Positions 7,689 to 16,869 of a DNA stretch of 64,000 bases are shown one piece after another. The translations under genes were made by a program, and so were the position numbers. The first letter of the stretch is position 1. Each line of letters begins with the position of its first letter. The stretch covers positions 248,001 to 312,000 of the forward strand of contig OZ025663.1 in the NCBI GenBank assembly GCA_964019335.1, in the 5' to 3' direction. The notes below the pieces were generated by a model. That model was not told the DNA's origin and searched no databases. It saw nothing but the letters and a program-made list of their open reading frames with translations. The DNA is from Diplonema japonicum (lineage: Eukaryota; Protista; Euglenozoa: Diplonemea).

Positions 7689-10600
7689 ATGGGTTGCACA
7701 TCATCGAAGGAAAAGGAAAAAGAGAGGGATGGCGGTGCTGCTGCTGCGGCTGCAGGTACAGGAGGGGAGCCTGCTGCTGCCCCTGCTGAGCCCCCTGCAA
7801 CCCATCCTGAAGAAGGCAACCCTGAACGAGAGCACAGACCACTCATACCCAGCGATTATAACCCCGATGCACCAGGCCTCTCTGACTTGGAACGGGGTAG
7901 GCGCAAGACACTGAAGAAAGCCTTCCTCATGGGGCAGAAGGGCGAGCCCCTCCCCCCCGACTGGAAGGAATCTGAAGCCCTTGAGCCCGAAGAACGTGCC
8001 GACCGCCAGAGCCTCCGCAACGCCTTCGGCAGAGGCAGACGATCTAGCAAAAAGGGCAAGCCCCCGTCTACAGGTGGCAGCAAGTCCACAACAACAAGGC
8101 AGCCTGCTCGACAAGGGGGTAAAGCCGTGCCAGGCGGCCCCCCACCTTCCATGGTCAAGGTGCAGGGCGGTAAACCATCGCAGCCCTCAACTACGTTGGT
8201 GAAGGGCATTCGTGGATCGTCCCCTCCGGAAGACAGAAGCTCGTCATCCTCCTCCAGCGACACTTCCACCAAGTCAGATGACGGGGAGAATTCCCTTCTG
8301 CTGGTGCTCTTGTCCAGCATCGTGTTGAGCGCTGTCTGCAGCGAATCTGCAATGAAAACGAGAGAGGCGGAGGAAAAGGAAGCGACGATGAAACGCATCG
8401 AGGAGCTCGAAGCCAGGGCCGTCGAAGCAGAGAGGAGGGCCGAGGAGCTGATGAAACATCGGCAGCCCACAAGCCCGCTGTCTCCGCAGTCCCCCGGCCC
8501 ACGGTCGCCTGGAGTGGTGTCCGTGATGTCGGAGGCAACGACGGCGCCCCCCAACGTGATCGGGCAGGGCTCAGAGGAGAGCTCCGCGTCGAAGTCGTCG
8601 GTTATCCACAACGACACCGATGACGGGCAGCTGTCAGACGAGGTGCCAGAGAGCAAGAAGACGGAGCTGCGGGAAGGGCTGCGAGTGTACTCAGTGGAGA
8701 CAAGCATAGAACCTGCAGGCACGCTGTACAGCATACAGAACATGTCAGACTTCACAGTGGCGGTGGTACTGTCCTTCATCGGAAGCGAAAACATCGACCT
8801 GAAGGTGGACGAAATCGCAGAAGCCCGCGGGACCAAGATTCTGACGGTGCACCCACCATACGGCATGGAGGTCTCATGCGAGGTACTGCCTAGCGACACC
8901 CTCAAAGTCGTGCGTGTGACGCCTGCCAATGAGTACGCTGCATGGACTGTTGCTGTGTCATCGCGATGGCAGCTGCTCACCGCGGAATCGCCAGCACGAG
9001 GCACCTCAGAAGCGCCAGCTGTTTCGTACGAAGTCCTGAACGCGGACAGCGAGCTGAAAACGTTGAAAGGCGGCGGCATCAAGACAGCGACGTCGCAGTC
9101 CTTGCCCTTCGTTGATGCGCATTTCCGCCCATCTGCGAAGTTTACCACTGAAACGGGTGTTCCTTCAAACGGGTGGCGGCGCAGTGAGAAGATCATGAAG
9201 AAGACCGTCATCAACGCGCTGTTCCCACGGGACTGCAAGATCCAAGCTGGCGAGGACTTGCGCTGGCTTGCGATGGGGTTGGCACTGGTGCTCGACACCA
9301 ACCCCGACATTCTCACATCCGTATACCCTTCTTTGGTGGCACCGAATAAGAAATGCAAGGATCTGGAGCGTGTGGGCGCCTTTGAGGCATGGTGGTGTGT
9401 CAAAGGGTGGTGGACAAAAATACTAACTGACTCCTACGTGCCTGTGAACGGGAAGCGCCCAGCTTTATTCTCGGATGAAGAAGTATGGCCGCTACTAGCT
9501 GTGAAGAGCTACGCAAAGGCGAGACGAGGGTTCAGGAGCGTAAAACACGGGACAGTGGGACACTTCCTGCAAGACGTGACGGGCTGCCCTTACAAAAGGA
9601 TACCGCTATCATACGCAGGCAACGAGTTCAACACCAACTCAGTGCATCCAGACGGCGACTACATGGTACTGTGGGAGGACCTGAAGTTACACCTAGACAA
9701 CGAACGAGTGGTGGGCGTCTCAACGAAAGAACATCTCGAGACGGAAATGACGTGGCGTGGCGACTGCGACGTGGAGCTCGTCGATCTGGACGGAGTGCGG
9801 CCACTGTGGAGCATCCCACCTGACACAACACTACCAGTTCTCGAATACTCCGAAGAAGGTGGGCTTCGCCTGAAAATCCGCAACAGGTGGGGATGGCCGT
9901 TGACGAAGAACACAAACGGCAAGATCGACACCTCCGATAGATGGGTCAACTACTCTGACGTACTCAACGCCTTCTCATCAGTCACCATCGGGTACGCCAC
10001 TCCAGGGTGGAACGACGTGAGACTACGCCTGCACGCGACAGATGGCAACATTGCCGACACCTTTTCAGAAGTGACTGTAGAAAACGACACAGCATGCCAT
10101 GTATGGCTGGGGTCCGACGATGAAAAACCAAGCCTCCTGGGCATCATGGTCCTTCAGCCCACCGAGAACAACAGGTACAGCGACTACACCGTCCGCACCA
10201 TGGTCGGTGTTGAGTCGTCGGCTCACGTCTGGGGCGAGGTGACGCTCCCTCGTTCTACAAAACCGTATGTCATCCTCCCGTTGATCATGGACGGCGGCGA
10301 GCAAGCGTTGAAGAGGGGTTTCACACTGGCAATGAGGACGTCTGAAGCAAGTAAAGGAAGCGTGGTGTTCAGAGGCAGTAAGGAGGAGGTTGTCCATCAA
10401 TCAGAGCTTGGCGCCATTTTACAGTTCGGAGAGTCGAAAGTTGTTGCAGAGGATGTGGAAACCGGTAAAGTGGTTTCCTTGAAGATCTGGCAGCAATACA
10501 GGCTTCTTGGATGCGCTGTTAAAAATGGTTCGGACTACCCAGTGAAACTCTCTGTTAATTTCACTGGGTCTGCGGGTTATGAGTGTGTTCGTGCCGGTCC

Positions 10601-10865
10601 GGATGTGTCGAGGAGGTCTCTTGCGTTCTTTTTGGAAGTACCTGCTAGGTCGTCACGTCATGTTTGTTCACTTGCTGCGCCTGGTGAGTCGTGGGAGTAC
10701 TCGCTTGAGGCTGAGTCTGCCTGGCTTCCCCCGCCCGCCACTAAAGCGAAACGTCAGAAAGATGCGCTCGTGATCCCGTCTTCTTACCCTTATGTGCAGA
10801 AGGAGATTCAAGTGAATGGGGATGTCAAGCATACAAATCACACTTCCTTCCCTACCCCATTGTAG
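7689..10865 (+). CDS. Calpain-like protein, catalytically degenerate, with N-terminal MGC dual-acylation motif
   Basis: Starts MGCTSS. CysPc-like motifs PFVDAHF.P, WRR, TDSYVP, WPLLAVKSYAK, LQDVTGCP and LKIRNRWG are present. The catalytic GDCW position reads DLRW and the HAY motif is absent. Confidence 0.8.
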   Translation: MGCTSSKEKEKERDGGAAAAAAGTGGEPAAAPAEPPATHPEEGNPEREHRPLIPSDYNPDAPGLSDLERGRRKTLKKAFLMGQKGEPLPPDWKESEALEPEERADRQSLRNAFGRGRRSSKKGKPPSTGGSKSTTTRQPARQGGKAVPGGPPPSMVKVQGGKPSQPSTTLVKGIRGSSPPEDRSSSSSSSDTSTKSDDGENSLLLVLLSSIVLSAVCSESAMKTREAEEKEATMKRIEELEARAVEAERRAEELMKHRQPTSPLSPQSPGPRSPGVVSVMSEATTAPPNVIGQGSEESSASKSSVIHNDTDDGQLSDEVPESKKTELREGLRVYSVETSIEPAGTLYSIQNMSDFTVAVVLSFIGSENIDLKVDEIAEARGTKILTVHPPYGMEVSCEVLPSDTLKVVRVTPANEYAAWTVAVSSRWQLLTAESPARGTSEAPAVSYEVLNADSELKTLKGGGIKTATSQSLPFVDAHFRPSAKFTTETGVPSNGWRRSEKIMKKTVINALFPRDCKIQAGEDLRWLAMGLALVLDTNPDILTSVYPSLVAPNKKCKDLERVGAFEAWWCVKGWWTKILTDSYVPVNGKRPALFSDEEVWPLLAVKSYAKARRGFRSVKHGTVGHFLQDVTGCPYKRIPLSYAGNEFNTNSVHPDGDYMVLWEDLKLHLDNERVVGVSTKEHLETEMTWRGDCDVELVDLDGVRPLWSIPPDTTLPVLEYSEEGGLRLKIRNRWGWPLTKNTNGKIDTSDRWVNYSDVLNAFSSVTIGYATPGWNDVRLRLHATDGNIADTFSEVTVENDTACHVWLGSDDEKPSLLGIMVLQPTENNRYSDYTVRTMVGVESSAHVWGEVTLPRSTKPYVILPLIMDGGEQALKRGFTLAMRTSEASKGSVVFRGSKEEVVHQSELGAILQFGESKVVAEDVETGKVVSLKIWQQYRLLGCAVKNGSDYPVKLSVNFTGSAGYECVRAGPDVSRRSLAFFLEVPARSSRHVCSLAAPGESWEYSLEAESAWLPPPATKAKRQKDALVIPSSYPYVQKEIQVNGDVKHTNHTSFPTPL

Positions 10866-11119
10866 AACCTTTTTTCCCCCCCCCCTAAAAAAAATAATAG
10901 AATTTCATATACATTGTCAACTTTTTTTGTTGTTGTCCCCCTTTCCCCTCTCTGTTTTTCCTTTTTTTTTGTTAGAAAAAAAAGAAGAAAAAAAAAGAAG
11001 AAGAAGAAGAAGAAAATGTGTAGGTACAGTCGTTTTTTTTTTTTTTCTTTTATAATATTATCACGGGGAAGGGAATCTTTAAATAAAAAGGCGTGGGGAG
11101 GGGGGAGGGAAGAAAGGAG

Positions 11120-11295
11120 ATGGATGATTACCAAGCGGGTTTGCTGAGAAGTTTTAGAGGAAGGAACCACGAAGATACGAAAGCCAACAGGAACGCCGTG
11201 AAAAAATGTAGCAACATGATGACAGCTTGGTCAATGGTGGGAATACCTTACTGGTGGACTAGCAAAATGACAGGACGCCCACCGGTACCTACAAT

Positions 11296-11326
<31 letters not shown>

Positions 11327-11970
11327 CGTTGGCAACGACGGCAGCGTTTTGTGTTTTCGGGGGGTTTAGCTGTGGGGCGTTGCATGAGTCGGCACTGTAC
11401 ACAATGGGTACCAATTCACACCCTATTACATAGTATGATGGCACAATTAAAAAAAAAAAAAATACTAAATAAATAAAAAGTGGTACGGCAATTACTATAA
11501 CAGCGTCAAGCCTGCAGCTGCTGATCTTGCGGGTGCCGCCGAGCGTAGCGATCCTGACCACAGGGCCGTTGGGGGTCTTCGGTGCAGCGGCTGTCCTCCT
11601 GGCAGAGAGCTACACACGACACAACTTAAATGAACGATTCGAAAAACTTGACGAAAGACAAGCTCCTGTCAGTTCTGTCCGCCCCGAAGACCGGCACCTC
11701 TACTCCCTCTACCGGCGTGCCGTTCGCGAGCCTCAAACAACAGCACAGCAACAAACACAGAAACCCCACATAGACGACTTCCGAAATGAAGCTGGGCAGA
11801 TTGACAGGACTGCGTTCGCCAAGGCCTACTCCGAACATATATGGGGCCCCTTTAAGCTTGACATCTCCCAGTTCGTGACCGACTCGACGAAGCTGCCCGA
11901 GTACGACCCTCACAAAGAGATCGAGAAAATGAACAACATTGTGGAAAAATACCGGAACAAAGATGAATGA
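11120..11970 (+). CDS. Hypothetical membrane protein; join(11120..11284,11323..11432,11481..11970)
   Basis: Removing two GT-AG A-rich introns (38 and 48 nt) joins three frames into one stop-free ORF with hydrophobic segments. Confidence 0.7.
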
Positions 11971-12107
11971 TAGAATGAGAAAAAGAAAATGATATCAAAA
12001 AAAAAAAAAAAAAAAAAAAAAGTGCTATCCCTATCTCATTCTTTTCTGTTCTCTTTTGTGCCGGGTTACTAAAAACATTAAAAAAAAAAGGGGGAGGGGG
12101 AGGGAAT

Positions 12108-14657
12108 ATGGCAGCCCTCCCAGCTGCCCAGGGGGGCATCCCCCCTGCATGTGGTCTACTCATTGTCGATCACGGCAGTAGGCGGTCCAACAGTAACGAG
12201 CAGCTAGTCGCCATCCGCGACATGGTACGGTCTCTCACGAAGTCCGACCCCCGCGTGCAAGACGTTGCCCATGCGCACATGGAGATCGCAGACCCCTCCA
12301 TCGAGGAGACGGTGGCAAGGCTGAAGCGTAAAGGTGCTAAGAACATCCACGTCCTCCCTTACTTCCTCTCAAGAGGCAGGCACGTCGCTGTCGATATCCC
12401 GAGCCTCGTGAAGGCTGCGTGCAAGAAGTACGCCGTCCCGTATAAGATCGCACCCGCACTGGGGCCGCATCCCGACTTGTCCCAGCTTCTCCTGACGCGT
12501 GCAAATGCAAGGAGCGGCACCCCCCTCATCGTCGTCGACCATGGCAGCAAACGTCCGCAGAGTAACAAGCAGCTCTTATCCGTTGTGGACGGCGTCCGTC
12601 GGCTTGTCCTCGGGCGCAACAAGGTGCACCACGCGCACATGGAGATCGCGCCCCCGTCTATCGAGGACAGCGTGCGGAAAATCGCGCGGGGCGGCGGGAA
12701 ATCTGTACACGTTTTGCCTTACTTCCTAAGCCCCGGACGGCACACTACAACAGATATCCCCGCCCTTGTGAAGGCAAGTGCTGTGAAGTATAACCTTCAC
12801 CACACAATGTCCCCTCCCCTCGGCCCGCACCCCATTCTGGCCAGGCTCCTCCTCAAGCAAGCATTTCCCAACTACACACCACCCGCACTTAAAAAAGGCG
12901 ATTGGCGCTCCCGCCACGGTCCCGAATCAGCATACCCCACGCAGCCTAAAGAGCAGCGCATCCTGAGAACCCTTTTTCGTGAACTCACCGCTAAGCCCGC
13001 CGACAGCATGCGTATTGCAGTAGGCTTGACAGCCATGATCGCGTCAAAGGACCTGGGGGTGCGCAGCGCTGTGGCGCTAAGGGATGCGGTGGACAGTGTG
13101 AAGAAGGAGAACACGCCTGTGGAGCACTTGATGCGGTACATGGGATACAAGGTCGCAGCGTCGTTACTGCAAGAGTCGAAGGATTTAATTTTCGGCCCTG
13201 TGGCGCAGAGCGTGCGGAGACGGGTGATGCGGAAGGGGTACGAGAAGCTGCAGAGCTTGGACCATGAGTTCCTCTCGGCACGATCACATGGGTCGCTGAC
13301 GAGGGTGTTGCAGAGGGGGGAAAGGGCGCTGGACAGGGTGGGGGCTATTCTTGTATTTCAGTTCATACCGACATTCGTGGAGCTGCTAATGGTGAGCCGG
13401 GCTTTGAGGAGCGTGGGTCCGCAGTACGCAGCGCGCACACTAACAATGGCAGGGGTCTACGGGCTGTGGTCCGTCCCGTCTACACACTTCAGAGCGAAGT
13501 TCAAAAAGGTGATGAACCACTCCGAAGACCTTTCCGCGGTGCGTGCCACCGATGCACTGCAGAACCACGAGCTCGTGAAGCTTGAAGGAACCCGTCGTGA
13601 CGAGGTCAAGAAGTTCGATGCAGCACAGCAGCTGTACTCCACAGCCTCACTCAACCAGCAACGATGCCTTGCGGCAATCAGAACCGGCCAGAGACTCGTC
13701 TTCGCGGGTTCCCTGTCATCACTCATGGCCCTCGCAGCTACGGGCGTCACAACAGGCGACATCACCCTAGGGGATCTGCTGCTCACGAAGACCCTCATGA
13801 CGCAGCTCACAAGACCTATGGAGCTGCTGGGCGCATATTACAGAGAGCTTCAGTCGGGCATCGCGGATTTGAGACAGTTGTTCACATTTATCCGACAGCA
13901 GCCGAGCATCGTGGACGGTCCGTTGAAAGACCTTCCCGAAGGGAGCCCGGTGCTGAAGCTGAAGAATGTGAGTTATAAATACCCGAAGAACGAAGATAGG
14001 AGCTTGAAAAATGTTAGTTTGGAGTGCAAGGCGGGTGAAGTCATCGCTGTAGTGGGGGAGTCGGGGAGTGGGAAGACCACCCTGACAAGGCTGATCCCAC
14101 GGTTAGTGGACCCATGCGAGGGGAGCGTGGAGGTGAATGGGGTGGACGTGAAGCGAGTTGTTGTAGAAGGGTTGAGGAAGAAGATCAGTGTGATCCCCCA
14201 AGGGAACACCTACATGAGGGACACGATACGTAACAACATCTGCTACGGGTTGGGAGAACAGAACAATGAAACACTTCTCGCCGCTGTCAAGAAAGCTGCC
14301 CTCGAGCCCGTCATTAAAAAAACCGGCCTGAGCGAGAACATGATGTCCCTTTCAGGAGGGGAACGACAGCGTGTCGCGCTCGCGCGCTCCTTCCTTAAAA
14401 ACGCTCCTTTGGTCGTTCTGGACGAGCCGACCTCTTCTCTCGACAAGCCCTCCACGGCAAAGGTGTTTTCCTCCCTCCTTAACGCACGGTCCGCCAACAA
14501 GGCGACCGTCATCATCGCGCACCACCTCCCAAACCCGCATCTCCTTACGAGAATTTACGTGTTGAAAAAGGGCCGCATCATCGCTGAAGGGACCCACGCA
14601 CATCTAATGAAGACATGCGAGCATTACAAACAACTAAGGTCGTTGAGCCTGACATAA
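12108..14657 (+). CDS. Tandem CbiX/SirB-type chelatase domains fused to an ATM1/ABCB7-like ABC half-transporter
   Basis: Two repeats of VDHGS..SN / AHMEIA.PSI / VLPYFLS.GRH..DIP / LGPHP. ATM1-like TMD (LTRVLQRG, F.PTFVE, DALQNHELVK, QLTRPMELLG.YYRE). NBD with GESGSGKT, LSGGERQR, LDEPTSSLD and IAHH. Confidence 0.9.
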   Translation: MAALPAAQGGIPPACGLLIVDHGSRRSNSNEQLVAIRDMVRSLTKSDPRVQDVAHAHMEIADPSIEETVARLKRKGAKNIHVLPYFLSRGRHVAVDIPSLVKAACKKYAVPYKIAPALGPHPDLSQLLLTRANARSGTPLIVVDHGSKRPQSNKQLLSVVDGVRRLVLGRNKVHHAHMEIAPPSIEDSVRKIARGGGKSVHVLPYFLSPGRHTTTDIPALVKASAVKYNLHHTMSPPLGPHPILARLLLKQAFPNYTPPALKKGDWRSRHGPESAYPTQPKEQRILRTLFRELTAKPADSMRIAVGLTAMIASKDLGVRSAVALRDAVDSVKKENTPVEHLMRYMGYKVAASLLQESKDLIFGPVAQSVRRRVMRKGYEKLQSLDHEFLSARSHGSLTRVLQRGERALDRVGAILVFQFIPTFVELLMVSRALRSVGPQYAARTLTMAGVYGLWSVPSTHFRAKFKKVMNHSEDLSAVRATDALQNHELVKLEGTRRDEVKKFDAAQQLYSTASLNQQRCLAAIRTGQRLVFAGSLSSLMALAATGVTTGDITLGDLLLTKTLMTQLTRPMELLGAYYRELQSGIADLRQLFTFIRQQPSIVDGPLKDLPEGSPVLKLKNVSYKYPKNEDRSLKNVSLECKAGEVIAVVGESGSGKTTLTRLIPRLVDPCEGSVEVNGVDVKRVVVEGLRKKISVIPQGNTYMRDTIRNNICYGLGEQNNETLLAAVKKAALEPVIKKTGLSENMMSLSGGERQRVALARSFLKNAPLVVLDEPTSSLDKPSTAKVFSSLLNARSANKATVIIAHHLPNPHLLTRIYVLKKGRIIAEGTHAHLMKTCEHYKQLRSLSLT

Positions 14658-14751
14658 GAAAGCAAGTCTTATTTTTTTTTTTCCCCCCCGCCCCTCCCTC
14701 TCCTTATTTCCCAGTCATATACAAATACAGTACAAAGGAGTGGACCGATTC

Positions 14752-16602
14752 ATGGGATGCTGTGCATCTACCAGCCTCGAAGGGGACTGGGAGTCGGAGG
14801 AGGATGAGGTCGGGAGGTTGATAAAGGATCGTGACGCGTCTGGAAACCCTATCAAAATAGGACTGTATCTAGAAGCAGTGGGCCTGCTATGGGGAGAGGG
14901 CGTGTCAAAGCTCGACTGCTTCGCTGTAGTCTTCGATGTGGTTGACGGGAAGGAGTCCATTGTAGGCCGAACAGAGACGAAGTACGACACGAAAAACCCT
15001 TCATGGGAAAACCCGGTTCAAATAGTGTACAAGTTCGAGGAGGTGCAGAACCTCATTGTCAGGATCTACGACGAGCAATCAAAAATCGGAGTTCTGTCCG
15101 ACCAGGTGTTCATCGGCGAGTTTGAAACAGAAGTAGCTACCATTTGGAACGAAACCCCGTGTGAAGAGGACATTGTGAATACATCTGAAAACCGATTAAT
15201 CGGGACTGCACGGATAACCGCGGAAGAGGTTCGACCAGAAGCCGTTCCGGAAGAACTAGTTGCTGACTTCCGAGCTGTTAACCTAGACAGTTCCATCGTT
15301 GGAACGTGCACGCCGTTCCTGGCCATCTCGAGGGTTATCGACCAAGAACTCGTTCCAATTGCTCGAACCGAGCACCGTCCGATAACCGAGAAAAAATCCA
15401 AAAAAGAAGCGTCCATCGTCGAGTGGTCATCGCTGCACGTTAAAGTCGATCGGCTATGCAAAGGCGACTACCACGCTTTGTTAGTCATTGAAGTCTACAA
15501 CTACGGCAGCAACAGGCATCATTTAATAGGGTCGTGCCGGACAACACTGTCTGAACTGTTGTCAAAGGGATACACAGAATACGAGCTTGTAAATGTGATA
15601 CGGCAGATCAACCCTGAATACAAAAACAGCGGTATTTTAAAAGTCGATTCTGTTCGTGTTGAAAAATGCCATTCTTTTCTAGACTTTGTGCGTGGGGGTT
15701 TCGACATCAACCTCACCGTAGCCATCGACTTCACATTGTCAAACAAAGATTTCGACAATGAAAAATCGCTTCATTACAGACGATCGACAAACAAGACGAA
15801 TGAATACATGTCCGCAATCCAAGCCGTGGGAAGCGTGATGTGTTGTTACGACCGGGATCAACAGTTCCCCGTGTACGGGTTTGGGGCTAGGTTACCTCCC
15901 AACCGAAAGATTTCTCATTGCTTCCCTTGCACGATGATGCCCAACAGCGTCGAAGTGTCCGGTCTAGACGGCATCGCAGAAATATACTGGTCCTGTTTGA
16001 AAGAAGTCGATCCAATTGAACCGACAAACATGGCTCCTGTTATACGGGAGGTCAACAATGTCGCCAAGCAGAAAATGGAACAAGGCGAGCTATCCTATCA
16101 GGTGTTGTTGATTATTACAGATGGTGCAATATCGGATATGAGGCAGACGGTGGATTCGATAGTGCAGGCCTCTCATCAGCCAGTGTCGATTCTGATCGTA
16201 GGGGTGGGGAATGGTGACGATTTTTCCAAGATGGACATCCTTGATGCTGATAATGTTCCTCTGGTAAGTTCGGACAACGAGATTATGAAGAGGGACATCG
16301 TGGGATTTGTTCCGTTTAAAAATTATAAAGATATGGATCCTGATGTTCTTGCGAGAGAGTGTCTTAAAGAAATCCCGAGGCAGTTTACAACTTGGACTCG
16401 GCAGAATAGAATACAACTGCCTGAACGCGCGCCAGAGAGGGAGAGTCGAAACCAGAAATTGAAAAAAGCTGAGAGAGAGGAGCGGAGGATGACCCGGCAC
16501 ATGACGAGCGACAACATCGACGGTCTACCCGAACAGGAGATTCTTCAGATGCGTTCGAAAAAATCCTTCAAGGAAAAGATTCAGGAGAAGATTGGGGGGA
16601 AG

Positions 16603-16640
<38 letters not shown>

Positions 16641-16869
16641 GCAGCAACAGCCATCTTTGACGGACGATTTGAGCAGCAGTCTCAGCGCACCGCTGTCTAA
16701 ACCATTGCTTGAGGAGCATCAGAAGAACCTCCCGCCTTTATCGCAGCCCTTGACATCTTCTAAAACAACCACCTCGACTGCACTGTTTAACAGCAGGCCT
16801 AACCTTAGCGAGCTTTCGTCGCCTGTACCTTTCCCTGTCCCTTCGGACGTCAATTACCAGTTGCTTTGA
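14752..16869 (+). CDS. Copine (2x C2 + vWA domain), MGCC acylation motif, poly-Q tail
   Basis: Motifs SFLDFVRGG, VAIDFTLSN, SLHY, FPVYGFGA, PTNMAPVI, LLIITDG, SILIVGVG, LDAD and RDIV.FV. Confidence 0.92.

Follow-up and report, generated by a model that had tools for sequence, protein, structure and literature searches.

A single gene of the diplonemid Diplonema japonicum encodes a protein in which two CbiX-type chelatase domains are joined to an ATM1-like ATP-binding cassette (ABC) half-transporter; both families are well known, but the domain architecture is new. The gene occupies positions 12108-14657 of the window, that is, the whole 64,000-nucleotide stretch of DNA that was analyzed (C16:248001-312000 of genome G000, which was searched as 62.5 Mb in 132 contigs); positions given without a contig name are those of the window. 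We hold it probable, with appreciable room for doubt, that this protein unites a sirohydrochlorin ferrochelatase (SirB) module with a pump from its own branch of the ATM1-like transporters, with both parts working on one face of a membrane and a probable coupling between them through a ligand. The architecture physically joins cofactor synthesis to membrane transport in one protein. How enzymes and membranes pass iron and tetrapyrroles to one another is poorly understood, there is still debate over what ATM1-type pumps carry, and the evidence for a link between ABCB7 and ferrochelatase is limited to a protein-protein interaction. The parts of the gene are as follows.

12089..12090, forward strand: AG acceptor of the spliced leader; the contig of run X8 starts at 12090, preceded by the loose end TTTCTGTACTTTATT
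12108..14657, forward strand: complete coding sequence without introns, 849 amino acids plus TAA, for tandem CbiX domains and an ATM1-like ABC half-transporter (open reading frame listing, colinear RNA-like contig)
12108..12125, forward strand: hexapeptide MAALPA, disordered in the structural model (residues 1-8, predicted local distance difference test, pLDDT, < 50)
12150..12506, forward strand: CbiX domain 1, residues 15-133, with H22, E59 and H92 (Pfam, PDB sequence matches, alignment, model)
12522..12863, forward strand: CbiX domain 2, residues 139-252, with H145, E179 and H212; 53% identical to domain 1
12864..12950, forward strand: linker, residues 253-281, about 30 residues, with low pLDDT at residues 263-270
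12951..13895, forward strand: transmembrane domain, with an elbow helix at residues 282-293 and six long transmembrane helices at residues 297-596 (type IV exporter fold)
13953..14651, forward strand: nucleotide-binding domain, residues 616-848 (Pfam, model, motifs)
14055-14078, 14193-14204, 14349-14360, 14412-14426 and 14511-14525, forward strand: Walker A, Q-loop, LSGG, Walker B and H-loop of the nucleotide-binding domain, with all ATPase motifs present

The fusion is a real, expressed, single-exon diplonemid gene. Its open reading frame starts with ATG, and no alternative in-frame start occurs among the 43 codons that are open upstream of it. For a check of transcript and assembly, contigs of four public runs were compared over positions 10700-15700. 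A contig of 2616 nt from run X8, which is a contig and not a single molecule, is colinear with 12090-14688 and shows neither a difference nor a gap, and the unaligned letters at its 5' end, TTTCTGTACTTTATT, are the 3' part of the euglenozoan spliced leader, an end that diplonemids share. The body of the mRNA begins about 17 nt upstream of the ATG, and the acceptor is preceded by a pyrimidine-rich tract at approximately 12030-12062. None of the X8 contigs has a loose end of the spliced-leader or poly(A) type inside the gene. Run X8 is taken as RNA because of its spliced-leader tails, because its contig ends coincide with gene ends and because depth differs about 50-fold between neighboring genes (contig depths of 213.6, 41.2 and 2-6). 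In run X7, from another study, a contig covers 12030-15700 without differences, and its even depth across genes and spacers makes it look like DNA; identical DNA contigs of other studies bridge the junction between the CbiX and ABC parts. Furthermore, comparison with a close relative (run X1, 90-99% identical) lists 16 differences within the ABC part, of which 12 are synonymous, and a single indel, a 3-nt deletion. A preliminary description of this DNA, made from the letters alone, had read one uninterrupted frame of 849 residues at 12108-14657, with which the open reading frame listing and the colinear contigs agree. It had also feared a mis-assembly or an internal processing site at the junction, and neither was found in the X8 and X7 contigs, none of which is a single molecule.

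The N-terminal module is, as modeled, a natural covalently linked dimer of CbiX-small with a complete SirB-like class II chelatase fold. Pfam finds CbiX twice (E 5e-46; best stretch residues 22-128), with a PF01903 score of 155.7 bits over two stretches against a cut-off of 22, and in the genome scan the single domains reach 84.6 and 80.4 bits. When aligned with 27 CbiX proteins and Archaeoglobus fulgidus CbiX-S, each half shows a catalytic set, namely the histidine of DHGS (H22, H145), the glutamate of HME (E59, E179) and the histidine of GRH (H92, H212). The full His/Glu/His set is present in both halves of all three fused proteins, whereas all 24 unfused two-domain CbiX proteins aligned have it in one half only, which is the N-terminal half in some (SirB) and the C-terminal half in others. 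By sequence, each half is nearest to one-domain CbiX proteins of 125-260 residues, including a stand-alone SirB of Diplonema papillatum, and the PDB sequence matches of the module are CbiX-small and SirB. It is this resemblance to one-domain CbiX, together with the full catalytic set in both halves, that argues for a natural CbiX-small dimer. The AlphaFold model of residues 1-271 (pLDDT 92.4, predicted TM-score 0.87) consists of two beta-alpha domains, and its top Foldseek matches are the SirB structures 5zt7 and 5zt8 (Bacillus subtilis, TM-score 0.76-0.82) and 6jv6; later matches include FetB (9b86), periplasmic CbiK (2xvz), CpfC/coproporphyrin ferrochelatases, the siroheme CbiX 4ccs and human ferrochelatase. 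Thus, the two CbiX-small-like domains that had been placed at about 12150-12505 and 12520-12865 were recovered with nearly the same borders, their DHGS and GRH histidines are borne out by the alignment, which adds the HME glutamates, and the likeness to a linked homodimer holds for both the paired catalytic sets and the fold.

Comparison with known chelatases places the module closest to CbiX-small and plant-type SirB. The Archaeoglobus CbiX-S structure 6m25, for example, has the same domain of about 115 residues with a DHGS histidine, an ME glutamate and a G-x-H histidine, and the tandem domains of the fusion mimic the symmetric pair of the CbiX-small homodimer. In contrast to the separate chains of CbiX-small, however, the two copies here occur naturally in one chain and are attached to a membrane pump, and no C-terminal cysteine motif for Fe-S binding is evident in the fusion. 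The engineered, covalently fused CbiX-S 6m2a is the artificial counterpart of this tandem; a natural version bears on the evolution of two-domain chelatases. B. subtilis SirB, CbiX-long and CbiK share the overall fold, and although SirB is the best structural match its sequence identity to the module is only about 18%. The two halves of the module are as identical to each other (53%) as, or more identical than, either is to nearly all of the outside proteins compared, and for this reason the duplication looks lineage-specific. In a tree of single CbiX halves, the diplonemid halves form a clade with a few unnamed one-domain proteins (95% support), the interior of which has no resolution, so that the tree gives no date for the duplication relative to speciation. 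The best NCBIfam match is the model of the nickel chelatase CfbA, at 119.5 bits and below its 120-bit cut-off, and the metal is not readable from the sequence.

The gene content of D. japonicum suggests what the module may do. The CbiX and CbiK models match no gene in the genome other than the fusion, and the Rossmann model of CysG-N/Met8/SirC (PF13241) has no match there. Porphobilinogen deaminase (HMBS) is present, as are two uroporphyrinogen-III C-methyltransferases (SUMT), both above the TIGR01469 cut-off, and one CysI-type assimilatory sulfite reductase hemoprotein (NF010029, 467 bits against a cut-off of 457), accompanied by a CysJ-like FAD/NADPH reductase, a cysteine synthase, an ATP sulfurylase and an adenosine 5'-phosphosulfate/3'-phosphoadenosine 5'-phosphosulfate (APS/PAPS) reductase. 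The cell thus needs siroheme and makes precorrin-2, and the genome offers no other candidate chelatase, which makes it most likely that the N-terminal module, judged by sequence, is the only sirohydrochlorin ferrochelatase of the cell. The siroheme pathway as a whole is most likely of the plant type, with SUMT and SirB, no CysG or Met8, and an assimilatory sulfite reductase as the predicted recipient. A check for HemH in the genome had been recommended, and a ferrochelatase was found at C24:325466-326526 (L013), with one intron at a poly-A run. The sulfite reductase gene (C4:800565-802516, L015/L053) has two short A/T-rich GT-AG introns of about 50 nt each. Pseudogenes or homopolymer errors were considered for the apparent frameshifts in these two genes and in a paralogue on C68 and were rejected, as the interruptions fit short A/T-rich GT-AG introns, a class described in D. 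japonicum (PMC12621601). Siroheme, cobalamin precursors and heme had all been named earlier as compounds that the fusion might handle; of these, siroheme is favored by the two SUMTs, the sulfite reductase, HMBS and the lack of any other sirohydrochlorin chelatase in the genome.

The C-terminal part has the features of an ATP-competent half-transporter. Pfam assigns ABC_membrane to residues 343-571 and ABC_tran to residues 633-776, and the motifs of the nucleotide-binding domain are complete (Walker A at residues 650-657, LSGG at 748-751, Walker B at 769-773, H-loop histidine H805). An intact nucleotide-binding domain behind an ATM1-like transmembrane domain, as first read from the letters, was therefore found in full, with six transmembrane helices in the model. 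The full-length model has a pLDDT of 90.9 and low confidence only at residues 1-8 and 263-270. The second of these regions lies in the linker and adjoins the motif HGPESAY (residues 270-276, nt 12915-12935), in which the four members of the clade described below all share H, G, S and Y. In the model nothing spans the membrane between CbiX and the first transmembrane helix, which places the chelatase on the side of the nucleotide-binding domain and the substrate entrance. For residues 272-849, the best PDB sequence matches are AtATM3, CtAtm1, human ABCB7 and yeast Atm1 (E 1e-80 to 1e-89), and the structural matches are CtAtm1 (TM-score 0.91 on the target), AtAtm3, NaAtm1, ScAtm1, ABCB7 and ABCB6. 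Among the latter are CtAtm1 with a glutathione-complexed [2Fe-2S] cluster (7pro), hemin-bound ABCB6 (7dnz) and ABCB6 bound to Cd-phytochelatin. In yeast Atm1, R280, R284 and D398 contact glutathione (PMC4700571). By alignment and by the spacing of 4 and 118 residues, these would map to R462 and K466 (nt 13488-13505) and to E580 of the fusion.

For all its likeness to ATM1 in both sequence and fold, the ABC half is no orthologue of ATM1/ABCB7 and belongs instead to a separate diplonemid-specific branch of the ATM1/ABCB6/HMT1 group. The preliminary description had called it an ATM1/ABCB7-type transporter, which stands for its sequence and fold and fails for orthology. It had also recommended a check for a second, conventional ATM1, and such a gene exists:

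C89:395235-397010: canonical ATM1 with an Arg-rich presequence, starting MLRHTGMVLSFSGMRRD

Insect ABCB7 matches this protein at 45% identity and the fusion at 34%, and the ATM1s of fungi and plants match the C89 protein at 46-50%. A D. japonicum protein in EukProt (EP01064) matches it at 100% and one of D. ambulator at 78%. A kinetoplastid origin of the DNA, which the spliced-leader tail, the poly-T spacers and the arrangement of genes on one strand had suggested, was rejected in view of the 100% match to D. japonicum. In a tree of ABC proteins made by a quick method, in which the backbone is without resolution and several branches are long, four diplonemid proteins of the fusion type form one clade (99% in the Shimodaira-Hasegawa-like approximate likelihood ratio test, SH-aLRT), apart from a well-supported clade of diplonemid canonical ATM1s that holds the C89 gene. 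The sister of the fusion clade is a D. japonicum paralogue (L007; 99% SH-aLRT). This second ABC gene of the fusion-like type (C68:162380-164841) starts MSALPAY and has one probable short intron inside the nucleotide-binding domain, and its N-terminal 260 or so residues give no Pfam or CbiX signal. Of the positions invariant among 16 ATM1s, the fusion keeps 52 of 89 in the transmembrane domain and 49 of 80 in the nucleotide-binding domain, and the whole fusion clade has substitutions at several positions where ATM1 and the bacterial ATM1-like proteins compared show no variation.

ATM1, ABCB7 and plant ATM3 are mitochondrial exporters of glutathione polysulfide or Fe-S precursors. The fusion shares with them and with NaAtm1 the half-transporter layout of six transmembrane helices and a nucleotide-binding domain, and by alignment R462 and E580 would fall at Atm1 positions that contact glutathione; however, about 40% of the ATM1-invariant positions are changed, and in place of the presequence of ATM1 the N-terminus of the fusion, MAALPAAQGGIPPACG, is without arginine and runs straight into the CbiX fold, with no mitochondrial presequence. 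ABCB6 and HMT1 are cytosol-facing members of the same ABC group, with porphyrins and metal-phytochelatins as substrates. They have the same fold, and the fusion likewise has an extra N-terminal module and probably cytosolic nucleotide-binding domains; yet their module is a membrane domain (TMD0) whereas that of the fusion is a soluble enzyme, and ABCB6 groups in the tree with two other paralogues in the genome (L005, L006) and not with the fusion. A further comparison is offered by LmABCB3, a euglenozoan half-transporter of the ATM1 family that has been linked experimentally to heme and to cytosolic Fe-S biogenesis (PMC4700571). Like the fusion it has a long lineage-specific N-terminal extension, but this extension of about 200 residues consists of a presequence, a transmembrane segment and a TRASH motif, without CbiX, and the protein is mitochondrial and the product of a syntenic ATM1-type gene (PMC4700571). 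We considered the extension, termed 'UNE', as a known equivalent of the chelatase module and rejected it, since it lacks CbiX and is Leishmania-specific.

Within the data searched, the fusion is restricted to some diplonemids and is split in at least D. papillatum. A search of 5.8 billion clustered proteins yields just three strong relatives over the full length. Two have both CbiX and ABC parts, namely a protein of Flectonema neradi (P0001, 890 residues, a complete transcript open reading frame) and one of 901 residues on a 300-kb ENA contig (P0002). The third, D. papillatum KAJ9464148.1 (P0003, 899 residues, named 'atm1'), is a member of the fusion clade without CbiX, and no CbiX signal was found in its N-terminal 300 or so residues. 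The N-terminal regions of this protein and of L007 were compared as candidate degenerate CbiX domains and rejected, with an hhalign probability below 1% for both. On another contig than P0003, D. papillatum encodes a one-domain stand-alone 'sirohydrochlorin ferrochelatase' of 144 residues (KAJ9460733.1). An exhaustive HMMER search that took the N-terminal module as query against 1.84 billion representatives returned one protein with E < 1e-30, P0001, and among the best 150 matches no other exceeds 410 residues; the ESM Atlas gave generic ABC clusters only and no large cluster with the CbiX-ABC architecture. The idea of a Rosetta-stone fusion is thus borne out by D. papillatum, which has the parts as separate genes. 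Full-text literature searches found no description of the architecture, in keeping with the earlier impression that it had not been described, and in the protein searches it occurs only in diplonemids and on the one ENA contig. The fused state in some diplonemids and the split state in D. papillatum, which is genetically tractable, form a natural pair for testing whether chelatase and pump cooperate. Diplonemids, although little studied, rank among the commonest heterotrophic eukaryotes of the sea, which lends ecological interest to their metabolism of sulfur and iron cofactors.

The N-terminal hexapeptide of the fusion provides a clue to its location. Its relatives begin in the same manner, with MAALPAH in Flectonema and P0002, MAVVPAV in P0003 and MAAVPAS in the stand-alone SirB of D. 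papillatum. In the D. japonicum genome, the pattern M-A-A-[LVF]-P-[AG] occurs 28 times against 10 for a reversed control, and a relaxed pattern 48 times against 14. At least a dozen matches are the first ATG of long open reading frames with no in-frame ATG upstream, for which a rough estimate of the chance expectation is less than one per approximately 20,000 genes. The codons of the tag vary synonymously between genes, so that any selection acts on the peptide. The tagged set is functionally coherent: it includes the fusion, both SUMTs, the sulfite reductase, the CysJ-like reductase, the cysteine synthase, a SufS-like aminotransferase, SufB, a SufD-like protein, an NADP-isocitrate dehydrogenase that adjoins a SUMT, and glucose-6-phosphate dehydrogenase. 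Two are exceptions to the rule on upstream starts, as the sulfite reductase (MAAIPA) has one in-frame ATG upstream and glucose-6-phosphate dehydrogenase has two. One further tagged open reading frame, with an HxxEH motif, may be an M16 peptidase similar to the presequence protease, although Pfam gives no match. The tag loci in G000 (L020-L071; minus strand marked) include the following.

C4:800565, C53:350859(-), C54:306048(-), C74:186261, C41:499533, C29:152769(-): tag loci
C53:348904(-), C33:123509(-), C13:433898(-), C11:138686(-), C98:29809, C57:453375: tag loci, continued

No literature on a MAA[LVI]PA motif was found. The tag may act as a signal for sorting, processing or degradation and so mark out a plastid-like SUF/sulfur/siroheme module. 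A tagged Rossmann protein (L039) was considered as a precorrin-2 dehydrogenase; it matches only an uncharacterized structure similar to short-chain dehydrogenases/reductases (3ius), which permits no conclusion. A stretch of about 36 kb at C49:314283-350734 (L030-L034) holds an internal peptide, MAAVPAVPLQQCRCHCH, in five almost identical copies; these have in-frame ATGs upstream, have the appearance of a tandem gene family and are for this reason regarded as unrelated to the tagged set.

In the tagged proteins the catalytic fold follows directly on the tag. Three other proteins instead carry Arg-rich presequences: the canonical ATM1, the ATP sulfurylase (C102:48254-48892, L048; MMTFTKTAMRGSLRQVRF) and the APS/PAPS reductase (C100:42176-42706, L051; MSIRRALQSTTRMTSMKRF), those of the latter two being of the mitochondrial type. 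Given these presequences and the tag on sulfite reductase and cysteine synthase, sulfate assimilation may be split between two compartments. In D. papillatum, the SUF system has been judged likely cytosolic (PMC12699882). An incomplete protein list for the mitochondria of that species contains one Atm1 and no siroheme or sulfite enzyme, which is too little for a conclusion. As the fusion shares its tag with SUF proteins and has no presequence, there is a weak indication from sequence that its tagged end, its chelatase and its nucleotide-binding domain face the cytosol, an orientation like that of ABCB6/HMT1 and unlike that of ATM1. The organellar route imagined in the preliminary description is not supported: the N-terminus has no presequence and begins with a hexapeptide common to SUF proteins, which are judged cytosolic in D. 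papillatum (PMC12699882).

In the mechanism that we propose, the two CbiX domains would fold together as one complete class II chelatase for the last step of siroheme synthesis, and the flexible linker of about 30 residues would tie this enzyme to the N-terminus of a six-helix, ATP-competent half-transporter. A homodimeric pump would carry two such modules, and the fusion would fix the iron-insertion step of siroheme synthesis to a membrane. Iron insertion would probably be coupled to the ATP-driven movement of a ligand that is handled on the same face, which is probably the cytosolic one, and this ligand may be either a thiol-liganded iron/sulfur species of the sort handled by ATM1-type pumps or, as has been reported for ABCB6, the tetrapyrrole. 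Several points weigh against this proposal. The substrate of the pump is not readable from ATM1, because only 58% of the ATM1-invariant positions in the transmembrane domain are kept and because of the replacements throughout the clade. The shared tag would put SUMT, sulfite reductase and chelatase on the same face, so that siroheme has no obvious need to cross a membrane. The reconstructed pathway has a gap, as no precorrin-2 dehydrogenase was found in the genome by the PF13241 scan. Plants show the same gap, along with the same arrangement of SUMT and a CbiX-type SirB. The mitochondrial-type presequences of ATP sulfurylase and APS/PAPS reductase make the compartment of the later steps uncertain, the cytosolic orientation leans on an unexplained hexapeptide and a conclusion from another species, and run X8 is read as RNA from its contigs and carries no record as such.

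A further-reaching version of this proposal, which we offer tentatively and consider rather doubtful, is a substrate-channeling machine in which ligand would be exchanged between the cavity of the pump and the chelatase. Thiol-liganded iron could pass to the chelatase, or siroheme or a mis-metallated tetrapyrrole could pass to the pump. As an integral part of an ABC transporter, such a tetrapyrrole chelatase would be the first of its kind, and it would lie within a previously unrecognized, probably cytosolic, 'plastid-like' diplonemid module, co-tagged with MAA[LVI]PA, that would unite SUF Fe-S assembly, sulfite reduction, the synthesis of cysteine and siroheme, and NADPH supply.

It is also conceivable, though unlikely, that the pump exports the product of the chelatase, which would be the coupling of metal insertion to export suggested in the preliminary description. 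Siroheme made on the cis face would then be handed into the pump and moved to a compartment where sulfite reductase or another user matures. The model is consistent with this scheme in placing the chelatase on the substrate-entry side of an exporter-fold pump, and hemin-bound ABCB6 (7dnz) is among the structural matches. Furthermore, ATP sulfurylase and APS reductase look mitochondrial, and if sulfite were reduced there too, cytosolic siroheme would have to move. However, the tag common to the fusion, the two SUMTs and the sulfite reductase, all four of which lack a presequence, points to one compartment on the cis side, and D. papillatum copes with an unfused SirB.

We give somewhat less credence to a scheme of import or delivery, in which the pump would work toward the side of the nucleotide-binding domain, or bind iron liganded by glutathione or trypanothione, and so feed iron or tetrapyrrole to the chelatase. 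The idea is wholly one of analogy. Mycobacterial IrtAB is an importer although it has the exporter fold, and its N-terminal domain, which lies in the cytosol, processes the iron-siderophore that is brought in. Like the fusion, it has a soluble enzyme at the N-terminus of an exporter-fold ABC protein, on the side of the nucleotide-binding domain, and this enzyme acts on a transported iron compound; it differs in being a flavin reductase attached to a bacterial importer of another ABC subfamily, and the likeness implies no homology. In accord with such a scheme, the model places the N-terminal enzyme on the cis face of an exporter fold, the Atm1 positions that contact glutathione are kept or conservatively changed (R462, K466, E580), and CtAtm1 with its glutathione-complexed cluster (7pro) is among the structural matches. 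Many ATM1-invariant cavity positions are changed, however, and we know of no member of the ATM1 family that imports.

Alternatively, the CbiX module may be a sensor or adaptor that binds tetrapyrrole or metal and regulates or loads the pump, while something unrecognized chelates siroheme. CbiK-fold heme-binding proteins (FetB 9b86, periplasmic CbiK 2xvz) do occur among the structural matches, and L007 and P0003 bear non-CbiX N-terminal extensions of similar length on the same type of pump, so that the N-terminus of the pump may be a general slot for accessory domains. Nevertheless, three observations make a purely sensory role quite improbable: both full His/Glu/His sets are kept in each of the three fused species, a genome that needs siroheme contains no other CbiX, CbiK or CysG-N candidate, and the nearest relative that stands alone, that of D. 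papillatum, is an ordinary CbiX-small. Finally, we give next to no weight to an artifact that joins two genes (through mis-assembly, or because a stop or a processing site was missed) or to an ordinary ATM1 with a chance N-terminal extension, given that an RNA-like contig headed by the spliced leader spans both halves, that DNA contigs of other studies are identical over the junction, that a complete Flectonema transcript open reading frame has the same architecture and that a separate canonical ATM1 is present in the genome.

The genes around the fusion were also characterized. Just upstream lies a small gene (11090-11970) with an open reading frame of 147 residues at 11527..11970 on the forward strand, starting at TTG or later and without a Pfam family. 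It has its own spliced-leader site at 11090 and an X8 contig depth about five times that of the fusion, and it is under coding constraint, with 13 of 16 differences from the close relative synonymous. The flanking genes encode a calpain-like protein with the N-terminus MGCTSSK (7689-10865) and a copine with C2 and Copine domains (14740-16869), the likely start of which is MGCCAST at 14753. The N-termini of both resemble motifs for myristoylation and palmitoylation.

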